From assembly GCA_003693705.1 (NCBI GenBank), contig RBZT01000419.1:124001-188000 (forward strand): DNA of 64,000 bases. The letters run 5' to 3'. Every line of letters starts with the position of its first letter. The stretch's first letter is position 1. Under the pieces are notes generated by a model. It saw only the letters and a program-made list of their open reading frames with translations, searched no databases and was not told the DNA's origin. This DNA is from Polymyxa betae A26-41. Lineage: Eukaryota > Protista > Endomyxa: Phytomyxea. Position numbers and translations under genes: made by a program. This document shows, one piece after another, positions 3,898 through 20,600 of this stretch.

Positions 3898-5395
3898 ATG
3901 TTGCAGACCCCGGATGGCGACGGTCGCCAAAGCCATCCGGTGCCGTCTAAACGATATAAATATTTTGTTCACAAAACGAAGCATGGTTCGATGCCTGACA
4001 TATGGACGAAACCGGTTGTTCATAGAGCAGATCGGGTCTCCCTTCCCGATGATCCACAGCTGAGGCGTCTGCAAATTATAGTGCGATTTCAGAGCATCGC
4101 TCTCACTCTTCAACGGCATCATTGTCAAAACGGCAGCGATCAGCCGCCATTGCAATTAATGACCGCATTGATGCAGAAAATTCAGGTCCAACGTGATAAC
4201 ATACGACTAAATAGCTATCATTGGGCCAGGAATTTTCGCTTCGCATTGTTCAAATGCATGAACGATTCGAAATCTTCGAGACTGGCAGCTTTCCTCAACA
4301 TAATAGTTTCTGCAGCAACGTATGCTGATATGATAGTTCCATATTTTTGTAAATTTAAAGCTTTTATATTTTAGGTTGATTTCAGTATCTGTAACTTGTG
4401 CTGAAACAGCGATGAACTCAAAGGATGGACTTCTGCTCGCTGAATTAATCTGCACATTGGTGTTCACTTGTGAATTCCTAGCAAGATTTCTCGCCTGTGC
4501 AACATTCAGAGAATTCTTAACCTGGCTGACGTTTATCGATGTCATCACTATTGGGCCATCATATATCGAATTCCTTTTGCCGCTTTTGGTGAGCAAAGCG
4601 TATATTTAGTATTATCTGTTTCAGCTAAGTTGTCAATGCAGATAAAAGACAATCAGATCGTGACATCAGCAGAGTTTCGAGTATTACGTGCCGTTCGAGT
4701 CTTAAGGATTCTTAAGATCGCTCGCCATTTAAGCTGGGTCCCAATGGTAAAAGAAGTGTTCCATGAGTCCTGGTTACCATTGGCTATGATGGGCTTCATC
4801 GTTGGTATCATCCTAGTGGTACTTTCTAGCATAATGTATTTTATCGAAAAAGATACTCCTGATAGGTGATGGTGCACATTGATTTATTTACTTTGTTTTT
4901 AATGATCGCATCTAGTTTGTTCATCAGTATTCCGACATCAATGTACTGGTGTATGATAACCTTAACGACAGTTGGTTATGGAGACATTGTACCTGTAACG
5001 CTGTTAGGGAAATTTTTTGCTGCCTGCACCAGTATTATTGGTATTTTGCTGCTCGCCATTCCCATATCCATTGTCTCCGACTCATTCTCAACATTATATT
5101 CAAGAAGACAGGATTTATGCGCTTTTGTCGAGACGTAAGGAACTCCCATCTCATGTTGTCAATTTGGTTCAGTCTATTCAGATATCGGAGGAGGAACGAG
5201 TCTGTCCAAAGACACATTTCTCACGAAGATAGGCTAGAATGGGTTATCCATATCGCTCATGAGATGACATCGTTCTCTGTCATCCACAAAATGAATCAGC
5301 AGATGCAACTAGATGATGTCGACGCCGACATCAGCATCCGGAAATTCTTTGCTAAATCTTTGGCCGAGGATGGCGATTTGGTTGTTACCAGATAA
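3898..5395 (+). CDS. Voltage-gated K+ channel (Shaker/Kv-like 6TM), multi-exon; start uncertain
   Basis: S4 FRVLRAVRVLRILKIARH; pore SIPTSMYWCMITLTTVGYGDIVP; S6 GILLLAIPISIV. Confidence 0.9.
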
Positions 5396-5592
5396 GGCCA
5401 TCAGCGTAGGAGTCTTTGCTGTCAGAAATTTAACGATCTGCTGGCCAGCAATTTAGTATTGCATAGCCGTAATACATAAACAGGGTTGCGCTCCTCAGTG
5501 TAGGGACCTTAATGTTAACAAACTAAGATCATTTCGAAACTGTCTTAACAACAAACTAGTCGGCCGTTGCTGGGAAGTGCAGACGGCGGCGG

Positions 5593-8294
5593 ATGAGTGG
5601 CAATGGATCGACGTTCAAAGTAGCGCTCGAACCTTGCGATGATATCCTTATGTCAATGGATTCGCCAAATCATATGTCGGCAAAAGCCGGAGATATCGGC
5701 GCTTTCGGCGAGCCATCATCGGATGTCAAAATGTCACAGATGTCTTCTGATGATGATCGGGATCAGTGGTGGGAAGTCCACGATTGGGACGGTGGTCATG
5801 AATCTGTGAAATTGCTGAGGGGTGAAGTGGCTGTCATGCGGGTTGACAATGTCCATCTCATTCTGGATTCCTCTTTGCCATTGCTAATGGCTCCGTCTGG
5901 GACTTTTGAAATGACAACGTACCGCCTTCGCTTTCTGCCTAAAGACAAGCACTGCGAAGTTGGTAGAATTCTTTCAGATTTCCCTTATATTTTTGCTGGT
6001 TGTGACCATCAAATGAAGTGGATTATGTTGAACTTTGCCGCTTTTAGGCCAGTGGAGTTTCTGCTGCGTTATGCTCCGCTCCTCTTGCGATGGTTGAACG
6101 TATTGAAAAGATTGAAGGCAGATGGGACCGTTCAAATTCAATTGAAATTCACACGAGAGATTACAGATTCTTGAGGTATAACCTTTAAGAAGTAATTGCG
6201 TTTTAATGAAGTTTTTGTTAGGCTCGAATTTCCGCGGGGCGAATCGATGCTCGAGAGGGCATATCAGTGTCTGGTAGGATACGTTTTTCCACAAAAGATC
6301 GATTTCGTAAGCTACAGTCTGGAATGGGCGGGTGTTTTGGACTTAAAGCTAGATAGCTGTTTGGATTTTTCTATTGCAGCCGCAAAACGTCATCAATTCC
6401 GTCGCACTTGGACGGATGGGCTCTGGTTTGTTGTTATACTTGTCAGTTTGGTAAATTTAATCTTCTAGCAGTACGATGGCTTAAAGGAACTTCTTCGACT
6501 TGGGATACCATCCGAGTTACTTCGAATTACTTCTGTTAACAAACAATTCGGTTTGAACGTTTTTCTTCTGAAAGTTGTTCTTAATCTCGTTATATTCAGA
6601 AGTCTGTGATTCATATCCGAGTCTGGTTGCAGTCCCAGCTTTCGTTTCAGATTTTGATATTAAGAAAGGTGCATTTGTTTTTTATGCTTTACAAGTTCAG
6701 CTCAACAATTACATGCAGTTGCTGCTTTTCGCAAAAGGGGAAGGTTTCCTATTCTCTCTTGGAAGCATCCCACAAGTAACGCCTCAATATGGCGATGTAG
6801 GTATGAACAATACACAGTCGGTTCCTCAGTACTGCTCAACTTTTTTCAGTCAGCCTAGGGTTGGCTGGAATCAGTCACGGTCTTCGTACGATGAAGGGTA
6901 AGTGTAAGCAAAACACTTTATTAACCTTGCCCTAACTTCATGTCGAGCTAGAATGTTAAGTGCGATTTTACGAACCAATCCGGGGCAAGAAAGCCTCCCC
7001 ATTTTTGACTGCAGGCCAAAAATGAACGCTGTCGGAAATAAATTGGCTGGGGCCGGTTTCGAGTTATCAGAATTTTATCCAGATTGTATTACAATAGCGT
7101 TGTCCTATTTTTGACTCTAAAAATGGTTAGGCTCCCTTACCTTTTTGAATATACAAAACATCCACTCCGTTCGAGATAGTGCTCAGAAGCTCGCCAAACT
7201 TTGCCGTTATGAAGGAACTGCAAGCAGTATGAATACGTCTCAGTTCATGAGTCGATTGGATGCATCGGCCTGGCTATCACATCAATCAGATTTAGTTCGT
7301 GCCGTCCTAGCCGGAGTCCAATGTTTAAACGAGTATGCCTTTTCGATATTGACACCAGTTGTCTAATTGCCCGAAGCCATCAGCAAACGGTTTTGATTCA
7401 TTGCTCTGACGGTTGGGATCGGACAACACAGATAAGCTCATTGATCATGCTTTGCCTCGATCCTTTTTATCGCACCTACGAAGGGTTTATGATTTTGATC
7501 GAAAAGGAATGGCTTGCATGTGGACATAAATTCGCAGAACGGATCGGGATGGATGCAGATCACTCAAATTCGCAGCGCGCTCCTGTCTTTCTCCAATTTA
7601 TTGAGACGACTTGGTAAAATTAGAGATCAATTTGCTTCTATTATTCTGATAACCGAATAATAGGCAACTATGTGTACAATTTCCTACAGAGTTTGAATTC
7701 AACACGAAGTATCTTTTGAGCTTAATGGATCACGTATGGTCCGGGAGATTCGGAACATTTTTTTGCAATTCTATTCGAGAGAGAATACAGTGCTGTTTGC
7801 GACAGCGAACCGTTTCTCTATGGACGTATATGCGTTCTCCAGAGTCTCGAATGTTATTCACAAACCCGCTTTATGAGGGCGCCGACCATGTGATTTATCC
7901 CAGTGCCAGTACATCCAAAATAAGGCTGTGGGAAGAGTTCTGGTTACGATCTGGCTTAGTTGAATATCCTAGGCCTCTTCGGCTGGACGCATTGCCGCCA
8001 AGAGCAGCACATCCTGTTTCGACATCCACCGAGATGTTGTATCAGTCCACGATATGGAGGTTAAAACAACAAATTCAACATCTGAACCAGATTTGCAAAG
8101 ACTTGCGTTCTGATACAGAGACCGTTGTCGATGATAATGTTGAGGATATATGTGAACAAGCCGATGACAGTGGCTCTCAGCAAACGCAAACCAGACTAGA
8201 GCGAGAGATACCCCAATTGGATCGTTTTAATGCGAAAAATACCATGATAGATTTAAGACAACCTTCTATTAATGCACCCATACAAGAAATTTAA
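5593..8294 (+). CDS. Myotubularin-related phosphoinositide 3-phosphatase (catalytically intact), multi-exon
   Basis: [14 protein letters not shown] catalytic loop; [26 protein letters not shown]; APVFLQF; [10 protein letters not shown]; C-terminal coiled coil. Confidence 0.95.
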
Positions 8295-8374
8295 CTTTAT
8301 CTTTATAGTGTAACAATCAAATATACTGAGATAGCCCCTTACTTATACAGTTATAATAAACGCCTTGAATGATA

Positions 8375-10221
8375 TTAAGATGAAGGTATCGGAGCAGCAA
8401 ATTTCGCTTTGAGCTCATCAAGACCGGCAGCTGTTGATTGTGACAGCTTTTGGAATGCCAATGCCATAACCAGCAAGCCTCGTGCGCGCTGTCGCCTCAA
8501 CTCGATAGAAACGGACGAATCGGAAAAAATTTTCTCGCAAACCGCCCTCAAAGTCGCCTCAACATCCAGAACGGTAACATTCCAACTAATGAATTTAGAT
8601 AAATTATGTGCCAACAACAACGATTGCTTATGGTACATTGTCTCAAGAACGGCGTCAACATTGCCAACAGGAAATGGCACTGATTCAGTTTCTAGTTCAG
8701 GAACCTGGCCATTTGATGCTAATTCCGCTTCGATGTGCTTCCTTTTCTTCTCCTCCTTTTCCTGAGCCTTTTTGGCCGCCTAAACTAAACGTTAGCAACA
8801 GCGACCTTGAAAGGAAGAGGATAATGCCTTGTACGCTTTTGCAGCAGAGCTTAACAATCGGAATTTGGTAGCAATAACATGAGCAGACTTTTTGATCCGA
8901 TTAACACCCATCCCAGCAGAAACGTTGTGATGGAATCCCAGAAAATTCAAAGCTTGTTCTTCATAGACGTACCCTAAAACCCCTAATCTATAATAAGTTC
9001 TATAATGAATATCCTTCTAAAGAGATTACCAAGTAGAGTACCACCAAATGCAGAATTAGAAAGCTCCTTCGCCTCGACCTCAATCGCAGTTTGAAAGGCA
9101 ATATGATCATCGCTTGTATCAGAGATGAACGCTTCTAGCTTGGCAGACAAATTCAACGCGCATTGGACTTCGCGTCGAAGCTGTCGATCTTTCGATTGAG
9201 CTTGGCCAAACGCACGCTCTAGCACTTCCTCTTGCTCATCTTCGTTAGCTTCGGGGTTTACAGTGTTAAGCACATTTTGCATTTGCATCACACGCAACTC
9301 TCCAATATACTCCTCGAATCGCTGAGATCCAAATACCAGCTCGAACAGCTGAGCGCTATCAAGCAGATTCTGCTGTTCCACACCAGCTTTACCGTTGAGA
9401 TCATATGAGGCGCGAAGACTTTCATCGGAGAGAATTTGGTAGGCTGCACCTAATTTCTGAAACTTTTCAGAGGCTTTCTCGTCATCGGGATTCTTATCAG
9501 GGTGCAACTGAATAGCCTTCAAACGGTAGGCTTTCTTTATGTCTTGCTGAGATGCATTCGGAGGTACACTCAGTTCATCATACAGTGAAGTATCAACAAC
9601 AGTTCGAGATGTGGTAACATCAGGGTTGTGGTTCTGCAGAACCCGGGCAGCTTCTTCAGGTAGACTATAATAATACCATTCTCGTGATTCAGGATTCCAA
9701 ACTTGATCACGCATGCCGCTTTTTATGGCGTTTGGTGTTTCATAAATCCCCCTTCCAACTTGGAACACACCGGTTGCTGCACCAGCTACAGTCAGAGCGA
9801 CACCGCTTACAGCACCAGCCAACAAGCCTATAATAATGTTGGAATAATCGGTTTAGACCGGATAGAAAGTGTTCACCTTTGGAAAACCCCTTAACACCAT
9901 CCTCTTTAGCACCTTGGATGGGCAAAGCAACCATTGCAGCGAGACCTCCGGCTAAACCCTGATACAGCAGCATTACAAATGATATCAGTCTCGAATCTGA
10001 TAAACAGGTACCCGCCCAATGTTTTTCAGTCCGCTTGATAAACCAGCAATAGCATGCTTGGGTCGCCTGACCGAGAACAAATCGAATTTCTCTGCTGGCT
10101 CACCCTGCTGATTGCCAGAGCCAGTAGTGGGGACTAAGCTATTGGCTTGGGACGGTTCCGGATGGCAATCAAGCTGAACGGCGGGCCCTGACGCCGGCGA
10201 TGGATGCGAAGGGGCCGCCAT
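8375..10221 (-). CDS. J-domain protein with DnaJ-X domain and N-terminal Gly-rich amphipathic region, multi-exon
   Basis: IKKAYRLKAIQLHPDKNPDD J domain; LFELVFGSQRFEEYIGEL; C-terminal LDVEATLRAVCEKIFSD..RRQRARGL typical of DnaJ-X. Confidence 0.9.
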
Positions 10222-11078: not shown

Positions 11079-14000
11079 ATGGATGATCACCGTCCAAATT
11101 CAAAGAGATCGAGCAGCAGCCGGTATAAAGTTGATCAAGGTCCAAATTGCTGGGCCATCTGTCACCCCATACATGATTGCTGATATTGCTGTTTATAGCA
11201 TCATCATCAAGTGCTACACAACATGATGGTGATTTAGGTGGTAGTGATGGTAATGAACCTGTTATAATGATACCACAACCTGATGAGAGTATCTCTGATA
11301 CTGATAATGTAAGTCCAACTGATAACATTCGATTAAAGACAGTCTCAATATTGTATTAGTCGAGCAAGAGAGCACCAGGCTCTGGTAATAGACAGCAAAT
11401 TTTAAGTCGTTCTAGCAGTGATGGAGATCTCCTTCATGACTTACCTAATCGTCCCGATACAAATGATGATTCACCAATGCCAAAACGCAAGAAGCCCAAG
11501 GTTATTGAACTATCTGTTTGTTTATGTAACCAGACACCTAGAACATATTTTGTAGGGAGCTACAACTGAGCTATCTAAGAAGGAGCTGGCTTTGAGAAAG
11601 AAGAAAAGCAAGAAGAATCCCCAGATTCAACGTCGTGATTCACTTGATCTATTAGATCCTGAGGTTGATGTTATACCTGGTATGACAGAAGCTGAAGCTA
11701 CTGCTAATAGATCTGGAGGTATTACTATCATCTGTAACATGATATATATGTAGTAATATGTTACATTAGATTGGGTTATTGACCCAGATTCACCATTTGT
11801 TACATATTGGTTAGCAATCGTCTATATCATTACTGTCTATAATGTCGTTGTTATTCCCTTCCGAATGTCATTCGGGTCAGTACGCTTCCGAGTAGTTTCG
11901 AGCAAATGCCAATTTTGTGTGGCAGATTGTTGAATAATACCATCGGATTCTGGTTCTTATTCGATTTATTCACGGATCTGTTCTTTCTTGCTGATATCTA
12001 CATCCATCATCATCTAGGTGTCTATGTTAAAGGCAGGAAAGTTCTTAATCTGAAGACCATTGCTGCACGATATCGATCTAGTTGGGGCCTGCCCATTGAT
12101 ATATGTGCTTCAATGCCCTTGGATCTTATTCAGGTTCTCAATTATATGAGCATCTCCGTCAGATCTTTGTACTAACATATACTCCCTCGATTATTACAGA
12201 TTCCAGCACGACAAATATTACCAGCAGCTAGATTACCACGATTACTTCGAGCTATTCACATTTTGGGTCTGTTGCCAAGCTGATATTTTTCGCTTTTTTG
12301 TCTGTTACAAATTTCGGATCGCACTTCTAATATTATTACGTTGCATGGAAAGGCGCTGATTGTACAATCTGTCGTTACAGAAGTAATTAATTCGATTGAG
12401 AATCAGCCCGGTGTTAATATCGTTTATGTTCGACTGATAAAACTGGCCATGTTCACTATGTTCATTAATCATTTCGCTGCCTGTGCTTGGTATGCTTCAG
12501 GTCAGATCTCAGCTATTCACTATAATAGTGATATTCGGGACTAAAATTCTACCACATCTCTTTAGGATATGGACTGGGATCTTTTGGATCCTGGATGTTA
12601 TCAAAATCAATCCAGGATTTGACTACAATTCAGCAATATATTCGTGCTGTATATTGGGCTATGACTCAGATGATAGGCCGTGGCATTGCTTACCCACTAG
12701 CACAAACTGAATATGAGGTATCAAACACATAATTATCACAATAATGTCTTCCTGCCTTGTTTCGGGGTTGTTTAGGTTTTAGGGTTTTCGGGTCCGATTT
12801 ATATAGAAATTGACTCATATATGTTGATTTAGTCGTTCCTGGTTTTATTCTACATCATAATATCAGCTCTATTTTATATATATGTTATGGCTGTAGCCAT
12901 ATCATTAGTTGAGAGCTCCAATACAGTCCAATCTGGATTTCAGGTGACGCTCAAATCATTAGGTTTACAAATAGCCATTAACTGCTTGTTTATCGTGTAG
13001 ACCCATGTCCGATACATCATGACATTTCTACGTGATCAGGGTCTGCCTACCCAACTACAACAAGCTCTTCAGGAATATTTCTCTTATGTTTGGCAATCGC
13101 AGCGTGGTAATGATGCCCGCGCCGTCATGCAACTATTACCATCATCGATATCTCAGGATATTCAGGTGATATTGGATGGCAGGCTGGTGATATCTTATAA
13201 CTAATGCTCGTAGATGTTCTTGGTTAAGGGGATTGTTATACGATGTCGAATGTTTAGCCAGATAGATCAATCTGCTCTAATTGCTGTTGTTAATATGTTA
13301 ATACCACGTGTATGTGCACCTGGTGAATATATTGTACATGCAGGTCACTAATCTTATTACTGCTCTTCTACTTCTATCTGTTAATACTCATGTCTATTTT
13401 TTAGGGATTCTGCAAGCATCCATGTTCTTTATTCAACAAGGAGAGCTGGAAGTATTAAGTACTAAATATAGAAAATCTGGAGAGCCAAGTATTGAGCAGG
13501 TACCTATTTGATGACATCGTAAACCCTAACTGATCTTATATAGGTGATTAGTTCATTAGTAACAGGTGATGCATTTGGTGAGATGCAAGTGTTTCTTGAG
13601 ATTCCAGCACCAACATCAATACGTGCCAAGACGTTCTGTCAGCTGTATGAATTCAATCGAGATCATCTTAAGACCTTAATCGATGTATATCCTGCTGATG
13701 CTCAACTACGTATGTTTATATATACAGGGAGCAGTACTCCCCATCTCATTTTATCTAACTGTCAATTACAGTTGTCAAGACGGCCAAGCAGATGCGAAAT
13801 CTAACTGATGACGACGAAAGTACACATCCGACTGCCAGCGTGACAACCGTTAAGAAACAGACTCCTACCACACCGACTAGCGCCGGTGTATGTTAATTCA
13901 TGCTATTAAAACACATATCTAACTGGTATATTAGGCAGGACGTAAAGATGATGGAACTATGGCTGGTACACCTGTATGGGCACATGACGATAATAGTGCT

Positions 14001-17000
14001 GTTAAAGATGATGACGATGATCTTGAGAAAGGTTTACATAGAATGGGATCTTCACCTTCTGCCAGGTATCTCTTCTCCATTCCATCTTGCAATTCATGTT
14101 TTCTCTTTGTCTGCATTCTGTGCCATGTACTGTTTCCTGCAAGCAACGTTATTATAACATGATCAATACAGGAAGCCATCTGATGCTACCACATCGCAAT
14201 ATGTTGGTAGCCGTAAAAGTAGCCAATCATCACGTAGATCAGTGTTACTTCTGAATACATCAGGTATTAGTGTGGATCTGTCTCTGATCTTTATTTCTAT
14301 CGTTATTCATAACTGAATTCAAACAGGGGATGAACTAGCAGCTCACTTTGTTACTAACTGGGAGCGCTGCCTCATTCTGGTCGTACTCTACGACTTTATA
14401 GTTATACCAATACGTGCTGGTGTGTTACCTTTAACAAAGCAGAACTCGTGGCCTTATCTACTATGTGATGCGATTGCTGACACATTCCTACTAGCAGATA
14501 TTGTACTCAGGTATCGGTATGCGGTTCAGTTCACAGGTAACATTACCAACAACAATGCACACTTGTACTGGCTGATGGGTAGTATCATAGATAAACCGCT
14601 GCTTGGTAAAGATCGATCAATAGATTTAATGACAGTGGCCCGATCACGTTATATACGTCGTTATCTGCCTATATATGGACTTTCATCATTCCCTCTAGAT
14701 TGGACTTTAGTATCTGTTGTTAGCTCTGGCATTCATCTCAATCTCATACTACGTCTTGTTCGATTCTTTCGTCTAGGTATGCTTATGCTATATACAGAGA
14801 TATTACCATTGTCATGTTCATGTTGTATGCAGGGACTGTACAGGAGATTTTATTCCGAAATCAACGCAATCTGAAATCTAATGCTAGGCTAATGTTTATA
14901 TCAACCTTATTACAGTTTGGATTAATATCACATGTACTTATCATATTACATATGTCAACATATGGATCAACATCTAATTCTTTCACTCTAAACTATACCA
15001 ACTCTCTCATACTTATGATTAACTCATTAACCGGTCTAGGACGTACTGGACTAGAACCTATCACTGAGTCACAAATGGTAACTAGACCCCTTACGTTACT
15101 ACTGCTCGAACATATTCGCTGGTTGTAACATTTGCATTATAGGTGACAGCGATATTAACATATCTATGTGGTGTATGGATGATGGCTATGTGTATTGGAT
15201 CATTAGCAGCATATATTACAGAACGTAATTCACTGGAAGGTCGCTTCTCACGTAACATGATCGCCGCACAGCGTTTCCTCGACTTTTGCAATGCTCCGGA
15301 AGTAATATAAAGGCATTTATATCTGTCAGACGTTACATCTCTAATACCTCTCAGGATATACAAGCACGTACCCGGGTATATTTTGAATCAATGTGGTCGA
15401 CAATGCGAGGTGTTGTTCCACAAGAAGCCCTGTCTGCGTTACCGTCTTCGTTACGGACCAAGATCATGATCGAGCTATGTCGTAACGTGATCAAGAACAT
15501 GCCCATATTCCAAGGTGTTTCACATAGATTTGTATATGATTTGGTTCCGAATCTCGAATATGAAGTGAGCTCTCCATTCGTTGGTAACATCACTGGGTAA
15601 CATTTCTATAACAGGTATTCCCAGCTGGTGAATACATATTTAGACGTGGTCAGATGCAGAATGGCAAAATGTACTTTGTTACACGAGGTGTATTATCTAT
15701 CATTTTGGATGAGACTATATCTACAAAACCCTTCAAGGTTCGCGCTTATATCTTTGTTGCCGTTTTCCATCGTATCAACCGAATATATAACTCAATCAGG
15801 TGATCGGAACCGGGTCGTTCTTTGGTGAGTGTGCGCTTCTAACGAACTCACAATTACGTCGGTCTTCAATTAAGACCGAGACATCTTGCCATTTGTTATC
15901 AATTATACGACCACGTTTAATGCAGATGTTTACGTAGGAATGTTAGGGTTTAGGGTTTTAAAGATTTAACTTTCATGATAGACTGTATCCAGTGTTCGGC
16001 GACCGAATGCGAGCTATGGCTGCTCAACGTGTCAAACGTCTGGATAAGACCCAGCAGAATATGCAGCAAATCTTACAAGAGGTGACAATAACAGCTGGAA
16101 ATACTGGCCCAATCAGTTTTCCAATAATGCTGCTGTGGTCAGGTTATGGCAAAAATTGAGGAGTCAAAACTGATCGCCAACCGGACCTATAACTTTATTA
16201 TGTATGAGGCATGCTTTGTTGGAAATGAACTCGTCAATTGGATCATCACCAAGGGTAAAACAGCATAAACCGCAACGATTTGTCACCCTTAAGCAATTGT
16301 TTCAGGTTATGCAGATAATCGTGAAGATGCCATGGCAATATGTGTGGCGCTTCTCGAAAAAGGTCTTCCCAATTATAACCTGAGACCGAATTTTTTTATG
16401 GTTTTTGTGTTGTTGAGTATTGGGCAACGGTATGGACATGTTGATTGAGATTATCTAGGGATGATAAGGTCAGTGGAACATGGCCATGAGGCCAACGACG
16501 AGGAGCCAGAACGTTTTATCGACGGTCTACATTTCTATCGTCTGGGCGCCTATGTCGATAAGATCGCCGTTAATGATCTGATTCTGATCCATCTTAGCCA
16601 AATGGTACATGAAGACACAGACCTGATCACTGACCTCAGACATCGTCTCGTTGCCGACCGCTCCTTTCAGGTATAGGCATCCCCCTTCAGATGATTCAGC
16701 CCTTGATCATCGCATTTATGTATACTTAATACTTAACTCACTATTCTGGTTGCAATTAGATGGAAGCCAATTTGATAAGCGCCCGTGCTCTCATGCATTT
16801 CCTGTTGAATACAAGCAATGTAGCAGCGGATCCCATTGAAATGGCAAACGCTGAATCTCGAGCCGAACAACTGGCTCAACGCCTGATTGACGCCAGCGTC
16901 CTGCAGAACATCAATCATTTTGAACGTTTTGAAAACAATGGCGCCGATTTCTATCGTTTACGTGCGTTGAATCCATCTGATCCACAGAATTCCGGTGGGG

Positions 17001-17546
17001 GCGATTTCTGGTCCAGTCCATTCTATCAAGCTGATGGAACTTTTTGATACAGGACCGGCAGCGACAGCGGTTATGCTGAGTGGGAAGACGCCGGCTTTCA
17101 GCGGGACTTTGCTCATTCGATCCACATACACGTTCTTGACGTATTTCGGGATCATCTCTACCAGCTATCCATCTACTATCTATCTGTATGCCTCAAAGCG
17201 TTCCGACCGTCCGGTTAGGATTCTGCAGACCAATTCCAGGAATATTACAGTTTCCAGAATAGAATTTTCTAATGCCGAACCCAAGTGAGCCTCGTGGTAA
17301 TCGAAAAGATTGAAATCTGACTTAGTGGGTAGATTAAGCTGTATACATCTATCTGTGGTGGAGGCGCCCGAGAAAAACATGATTGTATCGACTGATAAAC
17401 GTTGTGAGCGCGACCTGGTGTTCTGTTTTGATCGACAGAATACGTACCAATCGCTGTTGGAGATTTTGAAGGCGCAGGGATACACACAGAAGATTCGAGC
17501 ATTGTTGGCCACACCGTGGTCTACTGCCAGGGTCTCCAAATCATGA
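11079..17546 (+). CDS. Large multi-exon cyclic-nucleotide-gated/KCNH-like channel: 2x(6TM + C-linker + CNBD), then DEP-DEP-PH-like domains
   Basis: Repeat 1: WVIDPDSPF, YNVVVIPFR, DLFFLADIY, PIDICASMPLD, NHFAACAWY, C-linker LPTQLQQALQEYFSYVW/LPSSISQDI, CNBD SMFFIQQGELEV..GDAFGE. Repeat 2: YDFIVIPIR, DTFLLADI, SSFPLD, LPSSLRTKI, KMYFVTRG..GSFFGECAL. DEP-like CFVGNELVNWI...FYRL twice; PH-like tail. Confidence 0.8.
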
Positions 17547-17699
17547 TAGACGATATATATCGGGCAGATCCTAGACGCATACAATCCAGTAGCCAGCTTC
17601 AACCAATCTGGTCCAGAACATTCTACAGAACAACGGGATAATTCAGAGCCATTGCATAAATGTGCCTATTCATAGAATATGGATAATAATAGTAAACAG

Positions 17700-20600
17700 T
17701 TAGGAGTCGTGGGATAAATCCGAATCCGATGATGATCCCGATTCTGCTACCAGGGATCTCATGATCTTGTTACGGCCGCTTTCCAAAGATTCAAAAACCA
17801 TAGTAGCATCGGCCAGAACATTCTCGAAAGGGTATGAAACGTATTTGCCCCACGCCGGATATTTACACCATTCTTTGTATGGAAATTTCGGAGAGGAAAT
17901 TCCATGCAGAATGCGGGCGACCTGGAGATCATTAGATTTTGCAATGGCATCTATCAAAATGGCGGACCTGTCGCGCCGTCGATATTTTTTTTTGCCAATG
18001 TAAAAGAAGGACCTTGATATCGCCAATGAGATGTTCAGGACGATCCCGTTGTTGACAGAGAGAGTTGATACTCTCATAATCAGGCAATAGCGCCTCGGCT
18101 TCAGCGATTAACTGCTCGTCGCTGTCGCACACGAAGTACGCCGATATCATCTGCTGCAAACGCGGTTGGCATTCTGTTAAGGCGAAATGAGATTACAGTT
18201 CACAAGGCAAAGTTGAGCACCAATTGAACTTAGAAGAGCATTCAGTCAAGGCATTTACCTGGATTTACATCCAAACATCTCTCGGTGGCGACCGATTTCA
18301 GAATTTGCGAAACAATATTCACTTTCCGAAATGTACAGGATTCGTGCCGACTGCAAATAATGATGATAAATTGACAACAAAGACGACGGCATTTACCGAC
18401 AGAACTCCAACAAATGGGTACACAAAGCCTTGGTATCATCAGGACGCCTCAGGACCTCAATACAAAAACTCAAATCCTAATGAGCAGCGTTAAACGTCTT
18501 CACATAGTGACGTTTCAAGTCCAATGACCTTCCACAAAACGGAGATCTGTCCAAGGCTCTTGAGCGTCAATATTGTTCGCTGAACGTCAGCCACAGAAAC
18601 GTTAACAGCGTTGGCCACTTTGACTATGTTCACCTGATTAGACAAAACATTCAATGGATGAATATATTCGTCAATACGGAAACATATCCGTTCTCTCCAC
18701 AAAAATGAATGTAAGAGAGAAGGAGAAAACGTAAATACAACGCATAATTGCTTTTAGGGTTAATTTAGACCCCTTTCTTGATTGTAAGAACCAAAAAACG
18801 CTGATAAGCGTCTGAAAATAAAGAGATAAGATAGTCGTGAAACGCCTACAGAGAATGCCCCAGAATATGATCGACTCTGATTGATGATCTCAGCCAGAAC
18901 TGGGTCGGCACTGGCCAATTGCTGTTCGGGGGTTCGCAGGAACCGGATCGTACAAGTATTGTGCATCATAGGCAGGGCACGAATATATCCAGTGCTGAGA
19001 CCTGATTCAGCACTCAAGCCTGATCACAATCAAGACCGCCCCACCCAGTTTCGAACTCAAGAAATGTCAGAAAGGTTTCGACGACCTCCTCGCGAAGGTC
19101 GTATGCCTGCACCTGCTTGGTGCATGATAATGATACGAAATAGTGCTCTCCATATTCGTCATAATCATCGAATAGCGAACGTAGAAATGTTGAAACCTTA
19201 AATTAATGGCATCAACAGTTTGCGAAATCAGTAGATCGACTGACCTGGATATCGTCAGTTCCGTTCGAGAATGCCAACGACCGAAATCGATCTGCATCGT
19301 CTTCATCGTAAAATACGTGACAGAAGGCAGGCAGTCCATCACGGCCAGCACGACCGATTTCCTGTTTCAATATCAGCAAGATAAAAATCCTCCGAATTTT
19401 AATCCAACTTGAACGTAATGCTCCATCGACTGAGGGGTATTGAAGTGGATTACAGCCCTGACGTCGCTTTTATCCAAACCCATTCCTGTTGTGATTCAGT
19501 TACACCATGTTGCAGATTGAGATTGCAATCGCTTACCGAAGGCAATCGTGGCGCAAATGATTCGGGTCTAACAAACCGATCTCAAAAATGAAGCAATGAA
19601 AAAGCAATTGATATCTGACCTCGTTCGACATAAACTGTTCTTGAATAGTTCGTCGGGTTTTAGCATCTTTACCGGCATGATAGCTGACAGCGTCGATACC
19701 TTGCGCACGCAAACGGAACATCACCTACGACATGCTGATTGTTGGAATCTGAGCGCTAGCAAATCGAGAACTGGTCGCTGACTTCATCTGCTGTTCGCTG
19801 TTGATGAACGTAAATGATAATAGACGACAGGTCCCGAAATCGCTCCGAGTTTAAAAGATGAACTAATGCCGCGAATCTGCAGCACCTCGGTCAAAGAACG
19901 ATAGTCAATCAGAACGCTGCATTCATTGTGCAACCTGTCATTTTCTCTTGAAACCGTTAAAAGCAGGTTGTCACGGCGAACATCGGCCAGTATGACATCC
20001 CCAACGTCCAGCGACAGTTTACAACAGCTGCGTTATCTTTGATTTTCCGCGATAGAAATCAACGGCTGAGCATACGTACACAGAATTTAGAGTCTGTTTG
20101 GTGGCGGTGGCTGTCAGGGCCAGTATGCATTCAACACCAAGCTGATTTCGAAGGATGGTCCCGACTCGAACGAAAGCAGGCCGGAAGTTGTGCGACCTAC
20201 AGAATCTCTGTCGGCAAATGATTGGCAGCAACCTGGGATAGAACTACCATTGTGATACCTGCACATCACATTAGAAATCGATTCAAAAAATGGTGATTCA
20301 CAAAATCAGATAATCACAAAATCAAATTGATGATTTTCGGAATTCCCCACATATATTTCAGGAAAATCCCTGTTTTTTATATGCAAACTTGGATTGGGAT
20401 GAGGTCCCAGATTATAAATTGGCATAAAACAAAAATAACAGAGTCAAAAACGCCAAAAAAAACAGGGCATGTTTATCGTACACAATGAGCTTCATCGATG
20501 CAAGCAAATGAAACAGAGGATGGTGGCAGCGACCTGCAATAATCATGATTAACATCATGAAATAACGACGAGTTTCAGCCCACACACTGAATAACACGTT

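Follow-up and report, generated by a model that had tools for sequence, protein, structure and literature searches.

Polymyxa betae is a plasmodiophorid (Rhizaria) and an obligate root parasite of sugar beet with zoospores, and it transmits beet necrotic yellow vein virus (beet rhizomania). Its draft genome comprises 1,001 contigs with 27,085,946 bp and a GC content of 45.1% (PMC6328671). The gene described here is predicted on the forward strand of contig RBZT01000419.1 of strain A26-41, within a stretch of 64,000 nucleotides (contig positions 124,001 to 188,000) which is called the window in the following and to which all positions refer. Between 11079 and 17546 this gene combines two tandem channel modules, each containing a CNBD (cyclic nucleotide-binding domain), with a C-terminal tail which contains a DEP domain, a second DEP-like domain and a beta-rich region. 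Judged from its sequence, the DEP tail is probably part of the same polypeptide as the channel (we put the probability at about 0.6), to which it is connected through a single intron.

The forward strand from 11079 to 17546 consists of many short open stretches in alternating frames, a pattern typical of an intron-dense eukaryotic gene. The model assembled by script from the window contains 30 exons and 29 GT-AG introns with lengths of 44-115 nt (n=29). Its coding sequence of 4617 nt translates into 1538 aa with zero internal stops and ends with the stop codon at 17544-17546. A CTAAC-like branch motif is located 10-35 nt from the 3' end in 24 of the 29 introns, compared to 30% of exon stretches of equal length. 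A codon statistic, which was trained on the transmembrane and CNBD exons and then applied to the remaining exons, is above zero in frame and below zero out of frame for almost all of these, including the linker exons and the first DEP exons. Family and structure searches as well as AlphaFold predictions were done exon by exon, while the joined coding sequence served to assess whether the frame is continuous, to compute codon statistics and hydropathy, and for local tblastn comparisons with loci of the same genome.

An earlier note on this DNA had described two complete modules, each of six transmembrane segments (6TM), a C-linker and a CNBD, and both were recovered at the places given there by exon-wise matches and hydropathy (module 1 about 11772-13709, module 2 about 14327-16081). 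Segments S1-S6 of module 1 are encoded by exons 5-10 (11770-12943, +). They are supported by PDB matches, by hydropathy and by a tblastn comparison with repeat 1 of P0001, a metagenomic two-repeat relative of 1285 aa with two Ion_trans and two cNMP_binding domains. The S2-S3 exon (11927-12133) matches CNGA4, HCN3 and CNGA1 at 6e-6 (PDB), and S4 reads RLPRLLRAIH. The C-linker and CNBD follow in exons 11-14 (13001-13709, +), where the Pfam profile cNMP_binding is matched with 30.6 bits (3e-7) on 13544-13801. Segments S1-S6 of module 2 are encoded by exons 18-20 (14327-15301, +) and are supported by hydropathy and by tblastn with repeat 2 of P0001 (1e-6); here S4 reads LRLVRFFRL. The second C-linker and CNBD occupy exons 21-24 (15355-16081, +). 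The C-linker exon 15355-15564 matches SthK at 1e-9 and then CNGB3, KAT1, plant CNGCs and KCNH. Exons 22 and 23 match cNMP_binding with 22.3 bits (1e-4, 15615-15737) and 26.3 bits (7e-6, 15800-15931). The Pfam profile Ion_trans stays below threshold on single exons of both modules. In both halves the hydropathy peaks of S1, S2, S5 and S6 are found as expected, and the translation places three arginines in register in each S4. With a six-helix core, a charged S4, a pore loop between S5 and S6, and a C-linker plus CNBD after S6, both modules carry the features by which proteins are assigned to the CNBD-channel superfamily, and the gene very probably belongs to the two-repeat tandem branch of it.

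The two modules are not identical. Pore loop 1, as read from the sequence (12670-12684, +), is M-I-G-R-G and aligns with CIGYG of HCN channels and with the TGIG filter of P0001, with an arginine in place of the tyrosine of GYG. Pore loop 2 (15027-15044, +) is L-T-G-L-G-R and resembles LTGVGK of P0001 repeat 2 (SLTGLGRTGLEPIT aligned with ILTGIGSTEPPT). Neither loop is a GYG filter of the K+ type. The loops of P0001 are LTGIG and LTGVGK, with a lysine after the second glycine of repeat 2 where the Polymyxa protein has an arginine. Because the P0001 loops are alike, the TG-x-G loop with a basic residue is a trait of the family and not a peculiarity of this gene. The phosphate-binding cassettes, taken from the translation, differ as well. 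In CNBD2 (FGECALLTNSQLRRSS; ...LRRSS...) the conserved arginine is retained, whereas in CNBD1 (FGEMQVFLEIPAPTSIRA; ...APTS...) it is replaced and Pro-Thr stands for Arg-Thr.

Sequences with similarity to DEP domains follow directly after the channel on the same strand, as the earlier note had stated, and all the DEP-like and tail peptides quoted in it are present. Of the two DEP-like domains named there, the first is solid and the second remains weakly supported. DEP domain 1 is encoded by exons 25-27 (16143-16544, +; introns 16255-16305 and 16363-16458). When read across intron 25, it reaches 33.2 bits with the Pfam profile DEP (PF00610) on 16173-16367, above the cut-off of 32.7, and exon 25 alone scores 25.1 bits. 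For the same exon the best match is DEP domain 1 of DEPTOR (1.9e-6), followed by IML1, P-Rex1/2 and the DEP domain of Epac2. The second region, at the end of exon 27 and in exon 28 (16600-16960, +; intron 16671-16759), is a probable DEP-like domain below the family cut-off: the Pfam match of 14.7 bits (E 0.029) covers profile positions 32-71, which is the C-terminal half, while the N-terminal half lies on another exon. It shows in addition a weak match (E 0.58) to helix 3 of the second DEPTOR DEP domain.

A six-frame Pfam scan of the whole genome detected DEP at three places only, namely the channel locus and the contigs C316 and C613. On C316 (L012:5114-8644, -) an uninterrupted open reading frame (ORF) of 1176 aa joins the C-terminal part of a P4-ATPase to two to three DEP domains, and no protein in a library of 5.8 billion matched it at E 1e-10. 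The profile Guanylate_cyc had no match on C316. This ORF means that the fusion of DEP to a polytopic membrane protein occurs in this organism without any assumption on splicing. On C613 (L004:7198-7950, +) an ORF of 251 aa scores 38.7 bits for one DEP domain, which is above the cut-off, and carries a weak second one; no channel lies close to it. This ORF represents the sole further candidate for a DEP-DEP unit in the genome and may be related to the tail. The candidate loci on C824, C804, C728, C916 and C307, as well as a second stretch of C596, contained no relative of the tail.

The last part of the tail comprises about 150 aa in exons 29-30 (17053-17546, +; intron 17285-17332) and had been regarded earlier as PH-like. 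That assignment failed in the family and profile comparisons. The Pfam profile PH (PF00169) did not match exon 29 or exon 30 at E up to 10, none of the 65 PH matches across the genome falls on the channel locus, and hhalign of the tail with 14 PH domains of the same genome gave a probability of 0.2%. The C-terminal helix TYQSLLEILK lacks the tryptophan that is invariant in the alignment of the PH domains of this genome. Only the topology fits: AlphaFold models of the separate exons show four strands (predicted local distance difference test score, pLDDT, 44), then three strands and a helix (pLDDT 53), and in these low-confidence models the order of elements is that of PH, a seven-stranded sandwich with a C-terminal helix. 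A language-model feature search of a protein atlas with exon 29 returned beta-helix noise only. The tail may thus be described as a beta-rich domain with a possible PH-like topology.

The channel and the DEP region are linked solely by intron 24 (16082-16142, +), which is 61 nt long and has a strong donor and a weak acceptor. The donor GAG/GTGACA at 16082 is in the right phase and scores 5.3, which is within the top 1% of exon GT decoys and above the mean of the other donors. The joined sequence ...QQNMQQILQE/VMAKIEES... provides DEP1 with a full-length first helix, which corresponds in the alignment to residues 11-31 of DEPTOR. Moreover, the start of the open DEP frame lies 15 nt ahead of the proposed acceptor (16142), where it overlaps with the last part of the unspliced channel frame, so that no intergenic space is left between the two frames.

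Several properties of the junction and of the tail weigh against the fusion. The acceptor of intron 24 scores 0.8, and 36% of the decoys score as high. The intron has no branch-like motif, its GC content of 0.44 is exon-like and its in-frame codon statistic is coding-like (0.21 per codon). If it is retained, the channel frame remains open for 25 more codons up to a stop at 16157-16159. An ATG at 16146 lies three bases past the proposed acceptor, where a separate gene would need its start. DEP and PH are absent from all 45 related multi-repeat channels; among the relatives of P0001 are long multi-repeat proteins from Phytophthora, Aphanomyces and Saprolegnia. The codon statistic is close to zero for exons 27, 29 and 30, the last two of which are also without a recognisable family. 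Finally, the earlier note had stated that the two modules can be spliced into one frame. The open frame of 1538 aa agrees with this, and the junction of module 1 and module 2 is spliceable beyond chance, but the junction of module 2 and DEP could be joined by some GT...AG pair in 172 of 300 shuffles (57%) as well. The fusion is a gene-model inference that depends on one mediocre intron, and it has a credible rival.

According to this rival, the locus contains two genes arranged head to tail. The first would encode a two-repeat channel that stops at 16157-16159 (...SGYGKN), the second a separate soluble protein of about 350 aa with the DEP, DEP-like and beta-rich parts, which starts with the ATG at 16146; the fusion would then be an artefact of a chance GT...AG pair. 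Such an arrangement appears rather unlikely to us, yet it deserves to be taken seriously. It is favored by the start codon just upstream of DEP1, by the open and coding-like channel frame within the putative intron, by the poor acceptor, the missing branch motif and the ease of joining by chance, as well as by the 45 related channels without DEP. The compactness of the genome points in the same direction, as the neighbor on the opposite strand stops only about 150 nt past this gene. On the other hand, the frames of the two genes on the same strand would overlap by 14 nt, which leaves no room for a terminator or a promoter, and 16082 is a strong donor of the fitting phase. In addition, a protein starting at 16146 would have just seven residues before the point at which the first helix of DEPTOR is well under way.

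A further reading combines both outcomes. If intron 24 is spliced out, the product would be a channel with a DEP tail; if it is retained, the channel would stop at 16157 and lack the tail, which would then be a regulated option. The retained intron leaves the frame open for 25 codons before a clean stop, and the weak acceptor is of the kind for which retention is common. However, this is a refinement of the fusion and not independent of it, and we consider the production of both forms improbable. If this case is counted in, the fusion becomes slightly more probable than on its own.

The arrangement of the two modules within one chain is far less doubtful. They are connected by a linker of about 110 aa, rich in serine, threonine and aspartate, in exons 15-17 (13772-14263, +; introns 13710-13771, 13888-13934, 14066-14171 and 14264-14326). 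All four linker introns contain a (C/A)TAAC motif 13-15 nt from the 3' end. For the 620 nt between CNBD1 and S1 of module 2 a frame-preserving chain of introns was obtained in 21 of 300 dinucleotide shuffles (7%), and in 5 of 300 (1.7%) if exons of at least 80 nt were demanded. Since few shuffled linkers can be joined in frame, the junction between the modules is spliceable beyond chance. P0001 aligns exon by exon with both modules in tblastn. With the S1-S4 exon of module 2 as query, HMMER returned only two weak matches among 1.8 billion representatives, one of which is P0001, and a protein search with a profile made of P0001 and the single exons, which aligned badly, recovered only P0001. 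Searches of the own genome with the exons of the gene found the gene itself only.

Two further two-repeat CNBD-channel paralogues without DEP are encoded in the same genome. In the one on contig C839 (G000:C839:191001-200900, about 5400-9900 of this locus, -) both repeats contain the canonical filter TTVGYGD, and the end resembles a coiled coil; this channel is probably K+-selective and by its design half a CNGK. The other on contig C596 (G000:C596:198501-208400, about 4400-8200 of the locus, -) has two non-GYG pores and a frame after CNBD2 that ends in a basic, glutamate-rich stretch; neither Pfam nor a tblastn comparison with the exons of the tail detected DEP there. Tandem two-repeat CNBD channels are also known from oomycetes and dinoflagellates (Pozdnyakov et al. 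2020, PMC7576140). We have little doubt that the two-repeat layout of the Polymyxa gene is real. As it was published in 2020 and is found likewise in the two paralogues and in P0001, it is already known and not new. Three separate genes for module 1, module 2 and the DEP part are highly improbable: an in-frame ATG in linker exon 16 (about 13959, MAGTPVW...) and the stop of the unspliced module 1 frame at 13802-13804 would allow for them, but the linker has four well-formed introns and a spliceability that is rare among shuffles, the two-repeat layout is shared by P0001, two paralogues and published channels, and module 2 would have only the linker as N-terminal region before S1.

Like the published two-repeat CNBD channels (PMC7576140) and P0001, the Polymyxa protein very probably contains two differing modules of 6TM, C-linker and CNBD per chain. 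In contrast to it, those proteins are without DEP or any other folded C-terminal domain. The identity reaches only about 25-35% over the matched stretches, the Polymyxa protein coming from a different supergroup (Rhizaria), and no query found a close relative of this organism in the protein libraries. The CNGK channels of sperm and choanoflagellates are similar in that they consist of concatenated CNBD repeats, form a pseudo-tetramer and are likewise proposed to take part in signalling in flagellated cells. However, they are K+-selective and have four repeats, a GYG filter and no DEP, while the Polymyxa protein has two repeats and no GYG filter; it is not a CNGK. In CNGK a single repeat binds cGMP, whereas in the Polymyxa protein CNBD2 looks competent and CNBD1 does not. 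SthK, HCN and CNG channels are alike in fold and order of S1-S6, C-linker and CNBD, but differ from it in being assembled from four chains with a single module each.

DEP and CNBD are combined in one chain in one well-known family, Epac (RAPGEF3/4), and exon 25 matches, among other PDB entries, the DEP domain of Epac2. Epac, a soluble exchange factor, has the DEP domain before the CNBD and a catalytic guanine nucleotide exchange factor (GEF) part, while here DEP follows two channel CNBDs and no GEF part was recognised. For RasGEF there was no match in the general Pfam scans of the tail exons, no dedicated search for it being made. The back-to-back order DEP-DEP is probably shared with DEPTOR and P-Rex1/2, and both DEPTOR domains align to the two DEP regions of the tail. 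Those proteins continue into PDZ, to which the tail shows no similarity, and are not membrane proteins. The earlier note did not recognise any two-repeat CNBD channel with DEP-DEP-PH. Its two-repeat part has to be taken back in view of the published layout (PMC7576140), whereas the combination with DEP is found in none of the 45 relatives and our literature search revealed no publication that describes it. If the fusion holds, the gene would extend a known kind of channel by a new type of accessory domain.

On the basis of these features the following mode of action may be proposed. The gene would give rise to a membrane protein of 1538 aa with two non-identical CNBD-channel modules in tandem, and a pair of these chains, if they behave like other tandem channels, would assemble into a pseudo-tetrameric pore in which the two pore loops alternate. 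Since neither MIGRG nor LTGLGR corresponds to a K+-type GYG filter, the pore is expected to be a non-selective cation or Ca2+-permeable one and not that of a K+ channel. The dimer would hold two competent sites for cAMP or cGMP and two degenerate ones, because only CNBD2 retains the phosphate-binding arginine. With three arginines in register in each S4, the channel probably depends only weakly on voltage, like CNG or HCN channels.

The C-terminus would continue via intron 24 into the tandem DEP unit and the beta-rich domain. Judging from the functions of DEP domains in Epac, DEPTOR, P-Rex and Dishevelled, this tail would most likely anchor the cytoplasmic end of the channel to acidic phospholipids or to a partner that is a receptor or a G protein. 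Such docking would set the place of the channel in the cell or the ease of its gating. The earlier suggestions of a dimer, of the integration of lipid and G-protein-coupled receptor signals and of a function in zoospore taxis are reasonable hypotheses.

Plasmodiophorid zoospores reach the roots by chemotaxis. For Spongospora, published work indicates that zoospore chemotaxis depends on Ca2+ signalling (PMC8921600). We tentatively suggest, with less confidence than for the fusion itself, that the gene encodes the first ion channel with DEP in its pore-forming chain, that binding of DEP to acidic lipids or to a receptor or G protein sets its position or gating, and that it couples chemoreception to the entry of cations or Ca2+ in plasmodiophorid zoospores. 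If this is true, a CNBD channel with its own domains for docking to membranes or receptors would be a concrete candidate for the zoospore chemotaxis channel and could bear on how the vector of the beet rhizomania virus reaches its host. DEP would then be a new type of accessory domain in the CNBD-channel family, beside PAS in KCNH and the calmodulin sites in CNG channels. For now the value of the finding is limited, as channels with two repeats have been published before and the fusion is predicted from the gene model of one species.

The N-terminal region of about 160 aa is encoded by exons 1-4 (11079-11718, +); it is charged and of low complexity, with a frame that is open through introns 11140-11198, 11309-11359 and 11501-11555. 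No family match was found for these exons, and the start codon at 11079 is tentative. For intron 18 the first choice (14838-14887) was dropped. Its splice sites scored -1.7 and -0.2 with position-weight matrices built from the other introns of the gene, compared to 4.9 and 5.9 for 14777-14832, and the revised intron also eliminates an odd cysteine-rich stretch. Introns 9 and 23 contain degenerate telomere-like tracts of the TTTAGGG type (12758-12796 and 15941-15962, +), in both cases in the intron after a pore or CNBD exon. These tracts could be telo-box-like elements or remnants.

An unrelated second gene with Ion_trans similarity (4364-5111, +) is located 6 kb upstream and was recognized by three exon-wise Pfam matches, the best of them with 53 bits. 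Downstream, the frame of the next gene on the reverse strand stops at 17700, and the space between the two stops is 17547-17700. With stops of opposite strands about 150 nt apart, 3' ends are very tightly packed in this genome. Elsewhere in the genome, matches to guanylate/adenylate cyclases adjoin PH matches on the same strand at three loci (C720:144670-145852, C621:168916-170617 and C941:192590-196416, all -), and proteins of a cyclase-PH type may be recurrent here.

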